Below, one piece after another: positions 3,915 to 59,184 of a stretch of DNA of 64,000 nucleotides (position 1 is its first letter; every line of letters begins with the position of its first letter). The notes under the pieces were generated by a model that worked only from the letters and a program-made list of their open reading frames with translations, searched no databases and was not told the origin of the DNA. Position numbers and translations under genes: made by a program. Source of the stretch: Schizochytrium sp. TIO01 (lineage: Eukaryota; Protista; Bigyra: Labyrinthulomycetes); the NCBI GenBank assembly GCA_004764695.1, contig SMSO01000037.1, forward strand, positions 1,526,747 to 1,590,746. Reading direction: 5' to 3'.

Positions 3915-6900
3915 GAAACTTATTTACGTTTTCCCAAAGTGGGACCTGTAATGTGAAATTTCATCCAAATATGCTCGCATTAGGAGATTGGCATTTGCTA
4001 AGGTGCCCTCATTACTTTCTGGGTATCCGCAAGAACAGCTGTTTAAAGCACCACTTTCTGAGATCTGTGGGTGTATGTATCAATCAGCATGTCTGATATT
4101 TGATGGTGAACAGTATTAGTATCTATCTGCAACAATACAAAGTTGACATGTATCAATGTTCTTTGTTTCAATCTGCTACTTCTTCTCGATTTAACTAGCA
4201 CGTATCTACATGCATAGCTTGCTTACTTGCCTGTGCAACTTTATTTTTTTCAGTCTAGTTGCTTAATTTATTGAAGGGTTTTCCTTAAAATTTGGAGAGA
4301 AAAATAAAAAAACACCAAGAAAATCATTTAAATCTGATTCTTACTTACTCTCTAGCGTTCGTTGAATGCTCTAAAATTCTTGTGCATTATTGTCAGTTCT
4401 CTGGGCAACATTTTTGATCTCACTACGCGAGTGGGGACATCCAAATAAATTTCATATACATAAAGGAACTAACTCTTCAGTGCTCGACTTTACGGACACG
4501 ACCTCAAAGTTTAATTAGGATTAGCGCATTGCTTTTTCGTACAAATGTTGTAGCAATAGATGATGAGTAATTTATAGAAAGTACGTGTATATTGCAAACC
4601 ACCATTCATTGCTCAATCGAAAAATAATTATGTTACCCGTGAGATGCCGTTCTTCTTGGCATTTGTATCGCTGGTGTGTACCAATGATGTATTATTTTAT
4701 TTATATTTATTACATACAGGTTGAGAGAGAGAGAAATTTGGCTGGAGGTATTAAAGAGAAAATTATACTGAATTGCTTGCTAAACAATGATGTCCGTAAG
4801 CTAGCATCTTGCTTTTGCGTGTACTTGTTCTTCTTATATATTCTTATAAGACTTGAGTAATTTAATAAATAAATGTTTTCGAGATGTTTCTTCTAAATAA
4901 AAATGAAAAACGACTTCTTTATAAATTAAATTATAAAATCGAGTATGTGAGTAAAGTTATTAACAAAGCATTACCAAAAAATCAAAGATGATGAAAGAGT
5001 CATTTAAATTATTTAATTAATTAACATACTATAATATCTCTCTATTTTTTAAAAATAAGCTCATTCCATCGCAGTAAACCTGGTAGGGTAGCTAAGCTAG
5101 GCTAGCTATTGTATTGAATTCTGTTAAGATTATATATTATCATCACAGATGGTGGGTGATGTCTGTCAGACAATGTAAGATATCTAATCAGGTTCTGCGA
5201 TGCTTATTTACTTAATTTATGTCCAGTTATGTATTTAATTTATTAGGCGTTGATGACTGACTCTCTAGTCAGCTAATTGCAAATAAATTACTCTTAATTC
5301 TAAAGTCCTTATAAAAAGGAAACAGCAAATTCGATAAAATAGCAATATTTTATAAAAATACAAATATATTATAAAATATTTAGAAAACATAAATAATTAT
5401 ATATTTTAAAATTTAAATTTCCCAAAAATACATATTTGATATATATTTTGAAAATTAATATCAATAATCTGATTTTTCAGCAAAAGTTGAGACACAAATA
5501 CTGCTTATCTACATCAAAAAAGTCAAAATATATATATGCAACATAAGAACAACTAAGACAGTCATGGTGACAATCAGTAATAATAATAATAAATAGGTAC
5601 ATCAAGACATTTATCCGAGTAATATTCACGATTTTTGTGTATGCTATCTTAGATATATATATCTTAGATTTTGAAACAACATACAAAGAGATGCGGAGGA
5701 GTAACTAAAGAAAGGAAGGTAGTACATACAGTCAAATCAAAACCCATCCGCCGGAAGCCTGCCACAACAATTGAATTTTCTTGCCTTTGCTCATGTACAC
5801 TGTACTAAGTACTATTAATACTATTAGCTAGCCCTCAGGGGGCTAGCTGACCTTCGACGATCGTGCTACTACTACCACCCACCACCTCCTAAACAATAAG
5901 GAACAGAGCAAAGTAAACTCCGTCACTTTTCCTTACGCTGGAGCGAGCTTGCTTGCTGGCTATTACGCCGCAACCAGCGAATGGAGAGCGAACGAGCGAA
6001 ATCTTCGGCTCTTGTAGGTGCCCAGCTAATGAAAGAACCTTTTGCAAGCATTAAACTTATTTCTTTTCACAAACTGTATGTATAGGGTATTTGTTTAATT
6101 AAATTTGAAAAGATAATACAATTTCAGAATAAAATAATTGTGTAATTTATGTTATTGAAAACTTTTCATCTAGGAGAATCCTCATACTTGCATTAAGAAA
6201 ATGAAACTCTTGTATATGGAACGAAAATTTGCTTGGTCAATGTATATGTTCTGAATCCAAGTCTGATCAATCAAATAAATTTAATTACTATTGTTTTGAT
6301 ACTTTCGAGATATATTTGGATTTATTTTAATCATTTTCCTTATTTCTGTCTTGCTCTGCTTTCTGGCATCTGGCATTCTAAATTGTTGTGTGGTCTTTCT
6401 TTACCTATAAGCGATTATTTTCTCGATTACTTGTCATTAAAGCTTATTATTCTTAGAGTTTTGAATAGAAAGACCACAGATCTCCTTCCAACCTGAGAAA
6501 AAATATTCACGTGTTTGAAACATACAAAATGATTATTTAAAGTAGTTCCTTCGCTTAAGTGTCGTTTATAATGAATGATCATCAAATGTCTCAAAGTCAA
6601 CAAGATCATTTTAGAAAACAATAAACATAATCTAAGACAGATGTAAATCAACGATTGCAGATAAAAAGTGTTGAAATTGAATGTAAAAACATGCTACATG
6701 ATCTAACTGTTGAAAGCTATGGTATGATCATCTAGAGATTTAGTAGCAAGTTGCAGCCCTAATACATGAATGCTCAGAGGATTTTCAAAAGTATTTTTTG
6801 GTATTTTGGTTTTCGAGTTAGCGATAAGAAACAAATTCCTAGGTGGACTGTTTTCGATTGCAAAGTTTTTGTAGGGCGAAGATAAATACTGAGAAGGAAT

Positions 6901-6923
6901 TCAGACACATCTCTGCGACATGA

Positions 6924-7429
6924 CTTCGCAAGATTAAGAGGAGCCCCTATCTGACGAAACCAGGACAAAAGTGTCATGATGGCATGATGGGCGATGTACA
7001 ACACTGCGCTGGAATCAACCAGGGAATGAAGGGAATCAAGCAAGCATCGAGAGGGAGTCTGCAAAGCAAAACCTGTAGGCAGACCCGAAATACCAAAGCG
7101 ACCAGAAGCACTTGAATCTATCAAGCACATTCAACAAGACAACCCTAGCCATAATACTAACTAACTACTACCATCCAAGACATTTCCCCAAATATCTCTA
7201 ATTAATCATAACCACGTCTCATTAATAAAGGTGATTAAAATTGAGGAGGAAATGTCGCTCTCTCTTCACAGGTATTGCTAAAATATAATCTATGATGAGC
7301 CAAAGGTTGACCGGTAAGATGAAGGCCAGTCACATGGAATGTATTATAGAGACTTGGAAGGCATTTTATACTAGGGCCTATAAAGCCAGCAATCTGCCGA
7401 CCTTCGAGATGAACACTAATGCGGGTTGA
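6924..7429 (+). pseudogene. Possible highly decayed Fanzor/TnpB-like relic
   Basis: Frameshifted fragments occur in the expected order: LRKIK...YLTK (6924), KSVMMA*WAMYNTALE (about 6967-7014), VIKIEEEMSLSLHRYC (about 7231) and QRLTGKMK...AFYTRAYKASNLPTFEMN (7301-7414). Confidence 0.4.
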
Positions 7430-51613: not shown

Positions 51614-53459
51614 TGCCTCGTCGCTCTCGCGCTCTCTCCTGCCGCTGAGGAGAGACTCGTCGAGAGCGCTTTGATGGAGAAGAAATGAATGAAAATACAA
51701 ATGGATGAGTGAATGATGAATGAATAAATGAATGAACAGTAATGAATAAAGGTAAAGCGCAAAATTGACGGTCCCACTCATGGTACCGAGAGCAACGCCT
51801 TTCGGTACCATTCTACAAATGCAGTAGTGTTAGCTACTAGGTACTATCTCCAACCTACTTACTTAGTTAAAGGCTATGTGGACCACATTTAAGGCAGTAG
51901 TTACCACACGAACCTCCACCTACCTACTATCACTGAGTTGAATGAAATTTAGAATGAGAGGCAAGTTGGAGTAGACTTTTAGTATTATGATGCCCTCTCA
52001 GAGGCTACTCGCTATCAATTCTTTGACTTAGGTTAAACTTAAATCAAAATGATCATAGTCGTTTGAGTACTATCACTCCTTTGACTTGCTTCATGTTAAA
52101 CATTCTCCAGATCATGATGGTAGTATCTGGGTAAGGTACCCAGCTACAATGGGTAGGCTAGGTTTGTAAGGATTACACGGAAACAAGGACGAACACCCAT
52201 CACTCTAACGCTAGTGAGCAGGTAGGTTCGCAAGCACTGCTAAATCAATGACTTACATAGAGTGATGGTAATCAACATCCTCTGCTAGGACTTATTGTCT
52301 TGCAAGGCAACAATAAGTATCAAAGGCCAGGCCCTCCCGTAAGAGTTCATCGAGGAAGCCTTGTCGTGAGCACCGTAAAGTTCAAAGACGTTTTTATAAC
52401 TTTCTTCACCCTCACAACCGTCAGTCCGGACTACTCTATTGTTGTTGTGAAGTTGTAGCATCTGACCGAGGTGTTGAGACGCGGGCTTCATGTTAAGCCA
52501 GTTGCGTTTTTGACGAAAGATGTGTAGTTATTTGATGAGCACGCTTGATGAGTAGCCGGTAGACGGAGTTTTGAGTTGATGGTAGTAATTAACGCCGGTC
52601 AATCCATATTGTGATGCACTATTTTCTTTGATAAGATAGAATTGGGCAGTTCCATCTTTGAGATGAGCTACATCGCGGTGACGATGCTGTAGCCTGAAGG
52701 ATCTAGCAGGCTGCCATTCAAATAAAGAAACACATCATAAAGTCAGACGGTAGCTTTCTTGGTCTGGCTTGCGAACTCTCCCCTGTCTAGCCGATGGATC
52801 AAGCTACCTTCTACTTCATCAAACCAAGCAATCTCCTTCTGGCCTAGAGAACTGTCGTGTCCTGCGGATTCGAGATAAAAAGTTCTCTGGAATCAGACAT
52901 TCATCAAGGATGACGTTTTCCTATTTCAAGTCACTACATCGCGAGCCCTATGTTGACGCTCCTCAAATTGCATATCTAGTTTGCGCAACATGAGTGAGCA
53001 TAGAACTATAAAATAAGATGCAGCTCCAGAAGCACCATGCAAGCAAATGAAACCTGGACCTAAGAGATTAGATAAACCATGTAGGAACATCAACGACTAG
53101 CTAGCACTAGGAGGAAGAGGAGGAGAAGCAGGGCACGCATGTTAAGGACACCATCTACGAGCGCTGCGATTGCTTAAGGATTCTCAGGATCTAGGAGATC
53201 ACAGTTTGGAACATTTTTTTTGTATAATCACAATGACGGATCAAACGTTTGTGGTATTGAGCGCTAGAGATGGCCAGGTTGTACCCAAAAGCTGTACGCA
53301 GGCAAACTTGATAGCAGTTGCTTGTGTTGGATCTGAAATGAAACTAGAATATGACTCACATAGTTTATATATCAAAATGTATGCTTTCTTTTGTTTTATT
53401 CTCTTCTCTTCTATATATCCTTTGGTATAAACCTTCAACTACTACTTGACACCAAGGTA

Positions 53460-54420
53460 TGTAACCATAAAAGTGTTAGAACTTACATAACCGTCGAACA
53501 GTACCACTGACTATTCCATATGGAAGAACTTTATGATTATTTAGGTCTTTGTCAAGAAGCAGAGGTCAGGTAAGAAAACGGAATGGCCAAGGAACCAACA
53601 AGCTGCAAACACTACAAATGAAGCAAACCTACAATACAAGCCAGCAAAGTATTTCAAACAGAATCTTGACGTCTCAGCAAGTGCCCTTCGGATGCTTAAT
53701 CGCATATACGCAAATGACGACGCTGAGGGCACCTATGGCGGAGGTTTGTTCCGGCAGCCGCGAGCAACGCAGCACTGGTCGTACCATTATCTACGCCAGG
53801 AGTGTCCTCTGCCAAGCAAAATTAGAATTTCAAATGCCAAATTTGTTATCTACAGCGTGCCTATCCAGACGCTTCCGCTGTTTACAGAGATATCGGTAAA
53901 GTTGTCGACTGCAAAAGGCCGGGCCCTACCGGATTACCGAGATTCACCGCAAGCTTGCACTTTGGCTTTGGGAAAACTACGGTGTTATCCTTTTGCCTAA
54001 ATTTGAAACCTCAACAAGTTAAGTTGTCAACTTGGAGACGGATCAAAATCAAAACAGCTCGAATGATGTGTCGTTCAATGATTTCCGCCACGCGCTCATT
54101 CACAAAGTCGAGCTTCCCCTCTGGACAGGTGGTGTAAACTAGTTTTTTGCCGAGACGATTGCACTTCAAAACCATGCAATGAATGCGGTACCATCCACGA
54201 CAAGCTCGGAACATCCGAGGTTTCGAATGCCTGCCTTTAAGAAAATGCAAACACGTAGCTGATTGTGATATCCACGCCAACAGAGGCATCCCTTTGTGCT
54301 ACCTATCCATCCAAGAACATGATTTAAAAATTGCCTTTGAATCTCCTCTCAGTTTTTATCTCGCGATTGGACTAATGCGTCCAACTTTGTCACAATAGGA
54401 AGTGCAAGTTCTGCAAGTTT
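53460..54420 (+). mobile_element. Decayed, internally deleted Fanzor (TnpB-like OMEGA nuclease) element, Fanzor2-type motifs
   Basis: Frameshifted motifs occur in canonical order: LRMLNRIYAN (about 53686), DIGKV, ITEIHRKLALWLWENYGVILLPKFETS (53933-54013), RRIKIKTARMM (54036), FRHALIHKVE (54083), WCKLVFCRDDCTSKPCNECGTIHDKLGTSEV (54130-54222) and FEC...KCKHVADCDIHANRGIPLCYL (to 54305). The element boundaries are approximate. Confidence 0.88.
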
Positions 54421-55021
54421 TATAGAATGAGACTATCTCACCACTCTTAATATTCACAGCTATCATTTCGTGCAGGCCTTTGCAGAGAAATCGACAACAG
54501 TGCCTCTGTGCCTTGTTAAGTATTTGCTAGAGTCCAAGTTCGATGATAATTGATGAGCAATTTTATGCAGAAAATTGACTCAGAGAAGAAGAACGGACTC
54601 TGATTCCTTGATGTCAGAGGCGTCCTCCGCTTGGGAATCTTTGTTTTTTGTGCAATAACACGAGGATCTAATCTAGAAATCCTACTAGTTTATTGAGTCG
54701 TGTTGTTTAGATTGATATACAAAATGGGCCAGGTATCGATGGATTCAAGTGGGCATTCCTTATCTACACCCCAGTAGTTACTATCTATGTATTTGTCTAT
54801 TTGTCTATCTACCTACCTACCTAGTACTATACTAGTCATTGTTGGGGGGGTGAGAGGGGAGAAAAGGTGATTTCAAGATTTCAGTTTGCTCAGAAGTCCC
54901 GCGTGTTCATGAAAATTGAAGAGAGAGCTCAGAGAGTGTGCGCAATGACAACCATGACGCCATAGATGATGTTTACCAAGCTTTTATCTCTAGCCCCTTA
55001 CATTATTACGAGTCATGGAGC

Positions 55022-56755: not shown

Positions 56756-57961
56756 ATGAGCGCCGTTGGCAAGGACATCTTTATCGTTGCTGCCAAGCGT
56801 ACTGCCTTCGGTACGTTTGGTGGAAGCCTCAAGCACCTTTCTGCAGTCCAGCTTGGTGCTGAGGCAGCCAAGGGGGCTATTGCTCAGCTTCCCAGCGCAG
56901 ACATCATCGACACCGTACACATTGGCAACGTGCAGCAAACCACCACCGACGTTGCTTACCTTGCTCGTCATGTAGCGTTGAAGGCTGGTGTCAAGACTGA
57001 GGCCCCTGCCCTCACTGTAAACCGCCTCTGTGGTTCTGGATTTCAGTCTATTGTAAGTGGTGTCCAGGATATTCTTGTCGGTGATGCTAGTGTCGTTCTG
57101 ACTGGAGGCGCTGAGTCCATGTCTCAGGCCCCCTACCTTGTCCATGGTGTCCGCTTTGGATCTCCTCTCGGAGTGAACCCCCCCATGGTAGACTCCCTTT
57201 GGGAGGGTCTTCAGGACAAGCACGTTGGCTGCCCCATGGCCATCACTGCTGAGAACCTTGCAGAGAAGTACGGCATCACCAAGGAGGAGGCCGACAAGTT
57301 TGCTCTCCGCTCTCAGCAGAAGTGGGCTGCTGCCAACGAAGCTGGACTCTTTAAGGACGAGATTGTTCCGATCAAGATCAAGGATCGCAAGAAGGGCGAG
57401 ATTGACTTCGACACCGACGAGCACCCGCGCCCTCAGAGCACCATCGAGTCTTTGTCAAAACTCAAGCCGCTCTTTAAAAAGGATGGCACCGTATCAGCTG
57501 GTAATGCGTCAGGTATTTCGGATGGTGCTGGCGCTGTTGTCATTGCCTCAGCAGATGCTGTGAAGAAGCACAACCTCAAGCCCATGGCTCGTATTGTTTC
57601 CTACGCCATTGCCGGCGTTCCTCCTGAGATTATGGGCATTGGCCCGGTACCTGCCATCCAGGAAGCTCTTCGCCGCGCTAACCTCACCATTGACGATATG
57701 GACTTTCTTGAAATCAACGAGGCTTTTGCTTCGCAGTTCCTTGCCTGTCAAAAGGATCTTGGCTTTGACCTCGACCGCGAGGGAATCCAGTCTAAGGGTG
57801 GTGCCATTGCCCAGGGACACCCCACTGGTGCATCTGGCGCTCGCATCATGGGTTCCTTGGCCTACGAACTTGCCCGAAACCCATCAAAGAAGTATGCTAT
57901 CGGTAGTGCTTGCATCGGTGGTGGCCAGGGTATTGCCATTATCCTTGAGAATGTTGCATAA
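56756..57961 (+). CDS. ACAA2: 3-ketoacyl-CoA thiolase (mitochondrial ACAA2-like)
   Basis: AAKRTAFGTFGG, catalytic TVNRLCGSGFQ, GGAESMSQAP, DEHPRP, GNASGISDGA, EINEAF, GHPTGASG and SACIGGGQG. Confidence 0.96.
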   Translation: MSAVGKDIFIVAAKRTAFGTFGGSLKHLSAVQLGAEAAKGAIAQLPSADIIDTVHIGNVQQTTTDVAYLARHVALKAGVKTEAPALTVNRLCGSGFQSIVSGVQDILVGDASVVLTGGAESMSQAPYLVHGVRFGSPLGVNPPMVDSLWEGLQDKHVGCPMAITAENLAEKYGITKEEADKFALRSQQKWAAANEAGLFKDEIVPIKIKDRKKGEIDFDTDEHPRPQSTIESLSKLKPLFKKDGTVSAGNASGISDGAGAVVIASADAVKKHNLKPMARIVSYAIAGVPPEIMGIGPVPAIQEALRRANLTIDDMDFLEINEAFASQFLACQKDLGFDLDREGIQSKGGAIAQGHPTGASGARIMGSLAYELARNPSKKYAIGSACIGGGQGIAIILENVA

Positions 57962-58620: not shown

Positions 58621-59184
58621 ACATCAATCGAGTTGTCTTGATTTTGATCCGTCTTGTCAACTTAACCTGTTGAGGTTACAAATTTAGGCAAAAGGACAAC
58701 ACCGTAGTTTCCCCAAAGTCAAAGTGCAAGCTTGCGGTGAATCTCGGTAATCTGCAATCTCGGCCTTTGAATTCGACAACTTTACCGATGTCTTTGTAAA
58801 CGGCAGAAGTGTCTGAGTAGGCACGCTGGAGATAACCAATTTGACATTTGAAATCCTAATTTTGCTTGGGAGGACACTCTGGCGTAGATAATTGTACGAT
58901 CATTGCTGCGTGAACAAACCTTGGCCTTAGGTGTGCTCAGCGTCGTCATTTGCGTGTATGCGATTAAGCACTCGAAGGGCACTTGATGAGACGCTAAGTT
59001 TCTGTTTGAAATACTTTGCTGGCTTGTGTTGAAGGTTTACCTCATTTGTAGTACTTGGTGATCGCTGGTTCCTTGGCCATTCCATTTTCTTACCTAGCCT
59101 CTGCTTCTTATCATTCATGTAGATAGTCACTACCATTTGTAGGTTATATGAGTTCTAACGTTGTTCTAACGTTTTCATAGCTAC
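58621..59184 (-). mobile_element. Second, 3'-truncated copy of the decayed Fanzor element, inverted relative to the first
   Basis: The reverse complement aligns with about 53460-54070. A 33-nt block, GATTACCGAGATTCACCGCAAGCTTGCACTTTG, is identical at 53932-53964 (+) and 58720-58752 (-). Its KKMEWPRNQ...KPAKYFKQ...SALRVLNRIHANDDAE mirrors copy 1. Confidence 0.88.

Follow-up and report, generated by a model that had tools for sequence, protein, structure and literature searches.

A decayed short derivative of an IS607-type Fanzor2 transposon, very probably non-autonomous, in the genome of the thraustochytrid Schizochytrium sp. TIO01

The genome of Schizochytrium sp. TIO01 contains a stretch of about 1 kb in which pieces of a Fanzor nuclease, a eukaryotic relative of TnpB, are scattered over several reading frames. 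This raises the question of which kind of element left these pieces and how it came to be in its present state. The DNA analyzed here comprises 64,000 nucleotides of contig SMSO01000037.1 (assembly GCA_004764695.1, positions 1,526,747 to 1,590,746) and is referred to as the window. A sequence-only reading had proposed that positions 53460-54420 hold a dead, IS607-derived Fanzor2-type element and had quoted a series of peptides from its different frames as the remains of one Fanzor. All of these peptides were located in the three plus-strand frames of 53400-54460, in the order given and in alternating frames. No open reading frame of more than 151 codons is present in this interval.

The comparison with TnpB/Fanzor profiles, set beforehand as the refuting check, was performed with a hidden Markov model (HMM) derived solely from 119 distant Fanzor2/TnpB relatives, each of which is at most 48% identical to the family present in this genome. 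All 2,760 six-frame stop-to-stop segments of the 64-kb window were searched with this model, and significant matches were obtained piece by piece. They are located at 53900-54019 (HMM positions 414-441, E 7.7e-12), 54082-54237 (479-510, E 3e-9) and 54183-54395 (510-540, E 8e-5) and follow each other in the order of the HMM. The sole further match in the window belongs to a second copy of the element (58665-58718, E 0.024). Pfam searches with single stop-to-stop pieces of the window copy, from its Fanzor as well as its TnpA part, yielded nothing, because these pieces are too short and too decayed. Sister copies of the same repeat exceed the PF07282 cut-off with 26-44 bits.

A search for intact open reading frames, which the sequence-only reading had recommended, was carried out with PF07282 in the genome that contains the window (64 Mb, 37 contigs) and recovered approximately 17 open frames of 661-682 codons. 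One of the young copies, L031:4756-6960 (G000:C32), defines a parent element of 2.2 kb with two ORFs. The first ORF (243 codons) matches PF00239 with 72.3 bits at residues 94-227, shows weak MerR/HTH_17 matches at 39-77 and contains the motif YARVSSAKQK. By this domain content, it is an IS607-type serine-recombinase TnpA with a MerR-like HTH and a resolvase catalytic domain. It is located directly upstream of the Fanzor2 gene, which forms the second ORF (662 codons) and matches PF12323, PF01385 and PF07282 (50 bits), with HTH_OrfB_IS605 at residues 239-273, OrfB_IS605, and a Cas12f1-like TNB at residues 586-652. Young full-length copies number about 22-24 and are 88-99% identical; both ORFs are open in nine of the 20 that were fetched. 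The copy at G000:C36:1885148 is matched with 99.3% identity by a transcript-derived ORF from MMETSP (P0001, 601 aa). The intact copies and the matching transcript indicate that the nuclease family, which was supposed to exist or to have existed in this lineage, exists now, in at least nine copies with both ORFs open, and is transcribed.

Further observations were made on the young copies. In L031:4862-5565, and likewise in the other young copies, the long Fanzor frame runs through tnpA in another frame and is free of stops for about 230 codons. The first 225 residues of this long frame match the N-termini of 46 distant relatives with 33-47% identity (E 1e-29 to 1e-12). Of the 120 relatives listed, 36 have a length of at least 560 aa. 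The sequences suggest that, in the young copies, the same DNA genuinely codes for both TnpA and the N-terminal domain of Fanzor2. Four copies (L032, L038, L041 and L049) harbor the same insertion of about 295 bp inside tnpA, at the position corresponding to L031:4951/4952. In this subgroup the TnpA frame is truncated and a 665-codon Fanzor frame is open; its members are TnpB-only-like variants that are still being copied. Two of the 20 young copies (L045:1058-3881 and L039:262-3139) are positioned inside the left end of an old copy or at most 90 bp from it, in inverted orientation, and in L045 the first ~50 bp of the old copy reappear past the right end of the young one. This placement exceeds that of random insertion (p ~0.004, a rough estimate) and may reflect end- or guide-directed targeting.

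The intact L031 proteins were compared with 53300-54600 by tblastn, and both TnpA and the long Fanzor ORF produced colinear HSPs. TnpA residues 1-81, 82-115 and 99-158 correspond to 53545-53987, and residues 534-600, 600-630 and 569-658 of the Fanzor ORF to 53930-54308, with a set E of 2e-23 in each case. The view that all pieces stem from one Fanzor therefore needs correction. It is right for the C-terminal pieces, which are Fanzor2, but KKQRSGKK, LRMLNRIYAN and DIGKV match TnpA and are remnants of the IS607 serine recombinase instead of a Fanzor N-terminus. Their counterparts in intact TnpA are NKKWRLGKK, SASALRGW...RIYACDD and DIGSGVNFKRQGL, respectively, and RLQKA is a segment of TnpA DNA translated in the wrong (Fanzor) frame. 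Based on this homology, the upstream third of 53460-54420 is TnpA serine recombinase. An interpretation of DIGKV as RuvC-I was rejected, as it corresponds to DIGSGV of TnpA. With homology to both TnpA and Fanzor2, and with the indels and stops described below, the proposed identity as a dead IS607-derived Fanzor2-type remnant is upheld.

The extent of the element was determined from its repetition in the genome. DNA searches against the own genome placed the repeat bounds at approximately 53457-54427, and a MAFFT alignment of 19 copies, combined with the sharp ends of the young copies, placed the ends at GTAACC... (53462) and ...CTATCTCAC (54441), with an accuracy of about 3 bp at 72-76% identity. 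In the DNA alignment, the window element corresponds to L031:4756-5270 followed immediately by L031:6463-6960, and thus retains the left 515 bp and the right 498 bp of the 2.2-kb IS607-Fanzor2 element (Table 1). The alignments of the two arms end at L031:5270 and start at L031:6463 with an overlap of GA, a microhomology of 2 bp. Missing from the window copy are about 1.19 kb (L031:5271-6462), which comprise the 3' half of tnpA and, of the 662-residue long Fanzor frame, residues 1-533 with the DNA/RNA-recognition lobe and RuvC-I. The two transposon ends and the 3' RNA region have been retained. A GT...AG pair at the deletion edges is absent in all three possible placements around the GA microhomology, which indicates a deletion of DNA and not a spliced-out intron. 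The RuvC-I DPG segment is indeed absent, as had been noted, but its absence is due to this single, clean internal deletion, which is common to the repeat family, and not to erosion.

The only inverted repeat observed is an imperfect subterminal one of 21 nt with 76% complementarity at 53467-53487 and 54403-54423; young copies carry A/T-rich motifs like it near their ends. Such motifs may serve as binding sites of TnpA, or the match may be due to chance.

Table 1. Location of the short-form element, its parts and its second copy within the window.
Feature	Position	Strand	Basis
Whole element, 980 bp; very probably a short non-autonomous IS607-Fanzor2 derivative	53462..54441	+	Genome DNA searches; MAFFT of 19 copies
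Left arm: left end and 5' tnpA (MerR-type HTH, catalytic-Ser region, DIGSG motif), decayed	53462..53933	+	Homology to L031:4756-5270 (76% identity over aligned columns); TnpA aa 1-158, E 2e-23
Deletion junction, TnpA codon ~145 joined to Fanzor ORF codon ~534	53932..53933	+	GA overlap
Fanzor2 remnant RITEIHRKLALWLWENYGVILLPKFETS: helix preceding RuvC-II, with Pro roughly at the canonical Glu position, stop at end	53930..54019	+	tblastn (Fanzor ORF aa 534-563); HMM
Fanzor2 remnants RRIKIKTARMM (one frame) and FNDFRHALIHKVELPLW (another frame)	54036..54124	+	tblastn HSPs in two frames
Fanzor2 remnant WCKLVFCRDDCTSKPCNECG...: Asp for relocated Glu, first zinc-finger CxxC	54130..54222	+	tblastn (68% identity to Fanzor ORF aa 600-630); HMM
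Fanzor2 remnant FEC...C...DCDIHANRGIPLCYLS: second Cys pair, RuvC-III Asp	54225..54308	+	tblastn (aa ~631-658); HMM
Decayed 3' non-coding tail and right end	54309..54441	+	Homology to L031:~6835-6960
Second short-form copy, end-truncated	58621..59109	-	83.9% identity to 53554-54069, spans junction

The same break relative to L031 and the same junction sequence were found in all 19 short copies taken from other loci on many contigs. This bears on the possibility that a full-length Fanzor2 gene eroded in place and that the upstream pieces represent its own N-terminus together with a degenerate RuvC-I. Such a history would agree with the true Fanzor2 remnants among the C-terminal pieces and with the heavy decay of the copy. 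It is nevertheless very improbable, since the upstream pieces match residues 1-158 of TnpA and not Fanzor, and since a clean 1.19-kb deletion is present whose junction is common to 19/19 copies elsewhere. The latter indicates that the deletion preceded the insertion of the window copy at this locus.

The 19 short copies have common ends, unrelated flanks and lengths of 917-1004 bp. Their pairwise identity ranges from 69 to 80% with a mean of 74.6% (K2P 0.317 +/- 0.034), and the narrow, unimodal spread of the K2P distances fits one old burst. Searches of the genome with the 961-bp stretch yielded at least 44 scored matches and, at first look, 239-256 candidates. These matches are 71-77% identical, except for the second copy in the window (84%). 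The deleted internal part is represented by only about 23 young copies and about 20 old fragments; all copy counts are lower bounds. A long ORF occurs in none of the 20 loci. Young short-form copies were not found either, as all arm matches above 85% identity are part of full-length copies or lie in small solo fragments, and no consistent target-site duplication was seen next to 15 young and 19 old copies. The short family has thus retained both ends of the autonomous element and lost the coding capacity, and it shows the same internal deletion in dispersed copies. The shared junction together with the pairwise identity of 69-80% identifies it as an old, amplified, non-autonomous derivative family.

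A different origin of the short copies, not by transposition but by recurrent deletion at a hotspot or by segmental or ectopic duplication, is improbable in view of these data. The junction microhomology of only 2 bp would be compatible with it, and the second copy in the window, which lacks both ends, is a duplicate of DNA that had already decayed. However, the identical junction was seen in 19/19 copies, which differ from one another as much as they do from the window copy, and these copies show sharp common ends and unrelated flanks on many contigs. Moreover, the deletion is found in none of the approximately 22 young full-length copies, and the star-like distribution of distances fits a burst from one master. 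Amplification of a single deleted master thus remains the preferred explanation of the short family.

The state of the window copy was assessed by comparison with L031, to which its two arms are 76% identical. At least six frame-breaking indels were detected in the TnpA part and at least seven in the Fanzor part, including those at 54013, 54075, 54077, 54112 and 54119, and a TAG stop is located at 53823 in the TnpA part. The several frameshifts that had been reported therefore proved to be real and are accompanied by stops. The codon at the relocated Glu (54154-54156) is GAC and encodes Asp, in agreement with the claim that the shifted catalytic Glu is lost. The window copy reads CRDDCTSKPC at this site whereas intact copies read CQESYTSKTC; the canonical site is ILLPKF in both. 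The RuvC-I Asp within DPG is missing from the window copy, and intact copies carry ALDPGVR. The zinc finger with TSKPCNEC, the second Cys pair and the catalytic Asp are still recognizable but split over two frames. The RuvC-III Asp (54267-54269) is retained, with a Cys in place of the preceding Arg of RD. Decay also affects the 3' tail. The last 221 nt of the young copy fold better than shuffled sequences (z = -3.07), and this fold is lost in the homologous 232 nt of the window copy (z = 0.02). No Rfam families were detected on the window at the gathering threshold or on the young full-length element at E <= 1. Based on one fold z-score and the likeness to ApmFz2 described below, the 3' tail is probably a candidate omega-RNA scaffold. 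As judged from its reading frames and active-site residues, the window copy has no remaining function as a nuclease gene and is a fossil.

The frame changes could also be taken for short introns of a live, spliced Fanzor-like gene, as the host is a eukaryote. In addition, contigs from two public runs guessed to be RNA cover the element and little else (53355-54609 and 53361-54346), without the surrounding intergenic DNA; the wider of the two intervals exceeds the element by about 100-170 bp per side. The assignment of these runs to RNA is a guess, and the contigs show neither strand, splicing nor ends; joints within the element do not occur in contigs of the public runs. The frame changes are indels of 1-10 nt relative to intact copies and not inserts bounded by GT-AG, and the stops are located at homologous codon positions. 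RuvC-I and the whole recognition lobe are absent, the catalytic Glu is replaced by Asp, and other copies carry different lesions in different places. A functional spliced gene thus has a vanishingly small probability. Transcription over the dead element may occur.

The second copy in the window is located 4.2 kb away in inverted orientation and lacks both ends, and the two copies bracket a thiolase gene. They share private lesions that are absent from the 18 other copies, namely deletions of 12 nt and 8 nt and a small insertion. They also have 31 shared-derived substitutions in common, in addition to 14 and 40 private changes. These shared private lesions indicate that the second copy is a duplicate made after decay had begun. 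No flank homology was found between the two window copies. A route of duplication that leaves no intact ends implies that not every copy need be a product of transposition.

The element is positioned in a 5-kb intergenic gap between host genes on a 5-Mb contig. The adjacent thiolase (56756-57958) is 100% identical to a protein in JGI, MMETSP and EukProt, 90% identical to that of Hondaea fermentalgiana and 70% to that of Aplanochytrium, which supports the thraustochytrid lineage that had been considered probable. The locus of the fossil is present in 20 public runs from 12 studies, and contigs from four of them match at ~99%; the insertion is therefore old and shared. These data also speak to an origin as an endogenised giant-virus fragment or as a bacterial contaminant carrying IS607. 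One relative is annotated as 'A625R', presumably the name of a chlorovirus gene. Fanzor2/IS607 elements are, in addition, common in giant viruses (PMC3627910). However, the gap is flanked by host genes on both sides within the 5-Mb contig, the adjacent thiolase is fully identical to a transcript-derived protein of the organism, and the repeat, which measures 980 bp, has sharp ends and no viral genes next to it. The probability of a viral or contaminant origin is accordingly negligible.

Taken together, positions 53462-54441 of the window very likely hold a dead member of a non-autonomous family that arose by deletion from a eukaryotic transposon of the IS607 type. The parental element of about 2.2 kb encodes a TnpA serine recombinase and a Fanzor2 RNA-guided nuclease, with a structured 3' tail that probably supplies the omega-RNA. 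In an old master copy, one ancient deletion of ~1.19 kb between 2-bp microhomologies would have produced an element of about 1 kb that encoded neither protein and yet spread to dozens of dispersed sites. This spread was most likely possible because TnpA, provided in trans by full-length elements, recognized the intact ends. The short copies would then have decayed neutrally, and the window copy would later have been partly duplicated, in inverted orientation. Of this account, the homology, the architecture of the deletion, the common junction, the size and age of the family, its decay and the presence of intact relatives are directly shown, whereas mobilisation by TnpA in trans and the role of the 3' tail as omega-RNA are inferred.

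A more far-reaching interpretation, which we regard as unlikely although less so than the alternatives above, is that the short elements were stand-alone guide cassettes that parasitised an RNA-guided homing system, with Fanzor2 provided by the full-length elements. As the right end and the omega-RNA region are kept, short copies could have expressed guides of their own. Each copy would have had its own guide, Fanzor2 would have cut the emptied donor site, and the short element would have been copied back. If true, this could explain why a protein-less form outnumbers the old full-length copies in a eukaryote, and the young copies at old left ends could reflect guide- or end-directed targeting.

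The fossil itself changes nothing; its value is that of a pointer to a live system and to a probable record of trans-mobilisation. The live system is a young, transcribed IS607-Fanzor2 family in an oil-producing marine protist that is used in biotechnology. By analogy with characterized Fanzors, its intact copies would constitute a native programmable nuclease together with a serine-recombinase transposon, both directly testable. In the old short family, an IS607 derivative without proteins of its own has multiplied within the genome of a eukaryote. This family probably represents a natural record of trans-mobilisation and bears on the action of TnpA and TnpB/Fanzor in trans.

Elements of the parental kind were described in 2013, when Fanzor2 was found in IS607-like elements with a TnpA serine recombinase and without TIRs or TSDs in Acanthamoeba and giant viruses (PMC3627910). 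The nuclease activity, the rearranged active site and the structure of Fanzors have been published since (PMC10432273, PMC10530073, PMC10711439, PMC11832414). No mention of a Fanzor in thraustochytrids was found in the literature and supplements searched. An amplified non-autonomous IS607 derivative in a eukaryote was likewise not found in the literature searched, which is not proof of novelty. ACa-1/2 of Acanthamoeba, ISvMimi_1/2, ISvNY2A_1 and ISvAR158_1 show the same order, with TnpA upstream of Fanzor2 (PMC3627910). As in these elements, neither a target-site duplication nor long terminal inverted repeats were seen in the present family. It differs from them in its thraustochytrid host and in the long Fanzor frame that is open across about 230 codons of tnpA. 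The short family resembles MITE-like elements and the bacterial TnpA-less or TnpB-only derivatives of IS200/IS605-IS607, in which the ends are kept and the coding capacity is lost through one internal deletion, and, like MITE-like derivatives, the short form outnumbers the old full-length copies. In contrast to these, its parent is a serine-recombinase (IS607) element, its host is a eukaryote, and a candidate guide-RNA region is retained.

The best PDB match of the intact Fanzor is ApmFz2 (mimivirus L79, 9B0L; E 2.5e-18), followed by Cas12m and TnpB chains with E ~1e-6; a Fanzor1 chain is not among the matches at E <= 0.01. By these matches and by its linkage to an IS607 TnpA, the intact family member is a Fanzor2 and not a Fanzor1 or a generic TnpB. 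Fanzors are defined by DPG and an alternative Glu six residues upstream of the zinc finger (PMC10711439), and the motif [TS][TS]xx-C4 zinc finger followed by RD has been defined as well (PMC3627910). The catalytic triad of ApmFz2 consists of Asp324, Glu467 and Asp501, with the Glu about 50 residues off the canonical position (PMC11832414). These three residues align with the Asp of ALDPG, the Glu of CQESYTSKTC and the second Asp of DRD in the intact protein. Pro556 of ILLPKF aligns with Gly416 of ApmFz2, at approximately the canonical Glu site, and Glu608 is located six residues before the first CxxC. The rearranged active site that had been recognized from the fossil is therefore corroborated by its intact relatives. 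The intact member thus shares DPG, the relocated Glu, DRD and an N-terminal extension with ApmFz2, for which a structured N-terminal extension has been published, and a basic stretch may be a putative nuclear localisation signal as in Fanzor2 (PMC11832414, PMC10711439). The second zinc pair differs, being CxxxxC (CPNPKC) in this family and CxxC in ApmFz2. The window copy is still recognizable by its C-terminal third, but compared with ApmFz2 it lacks residues 1-533, has an Asp for the relocated Glu and is frameshifted. Measured against these known systems, the intact copies are, in sequence terms, of the known IS607-Fanzor2 kind in every tested feature, whereas the window copy fails in the functional ones.
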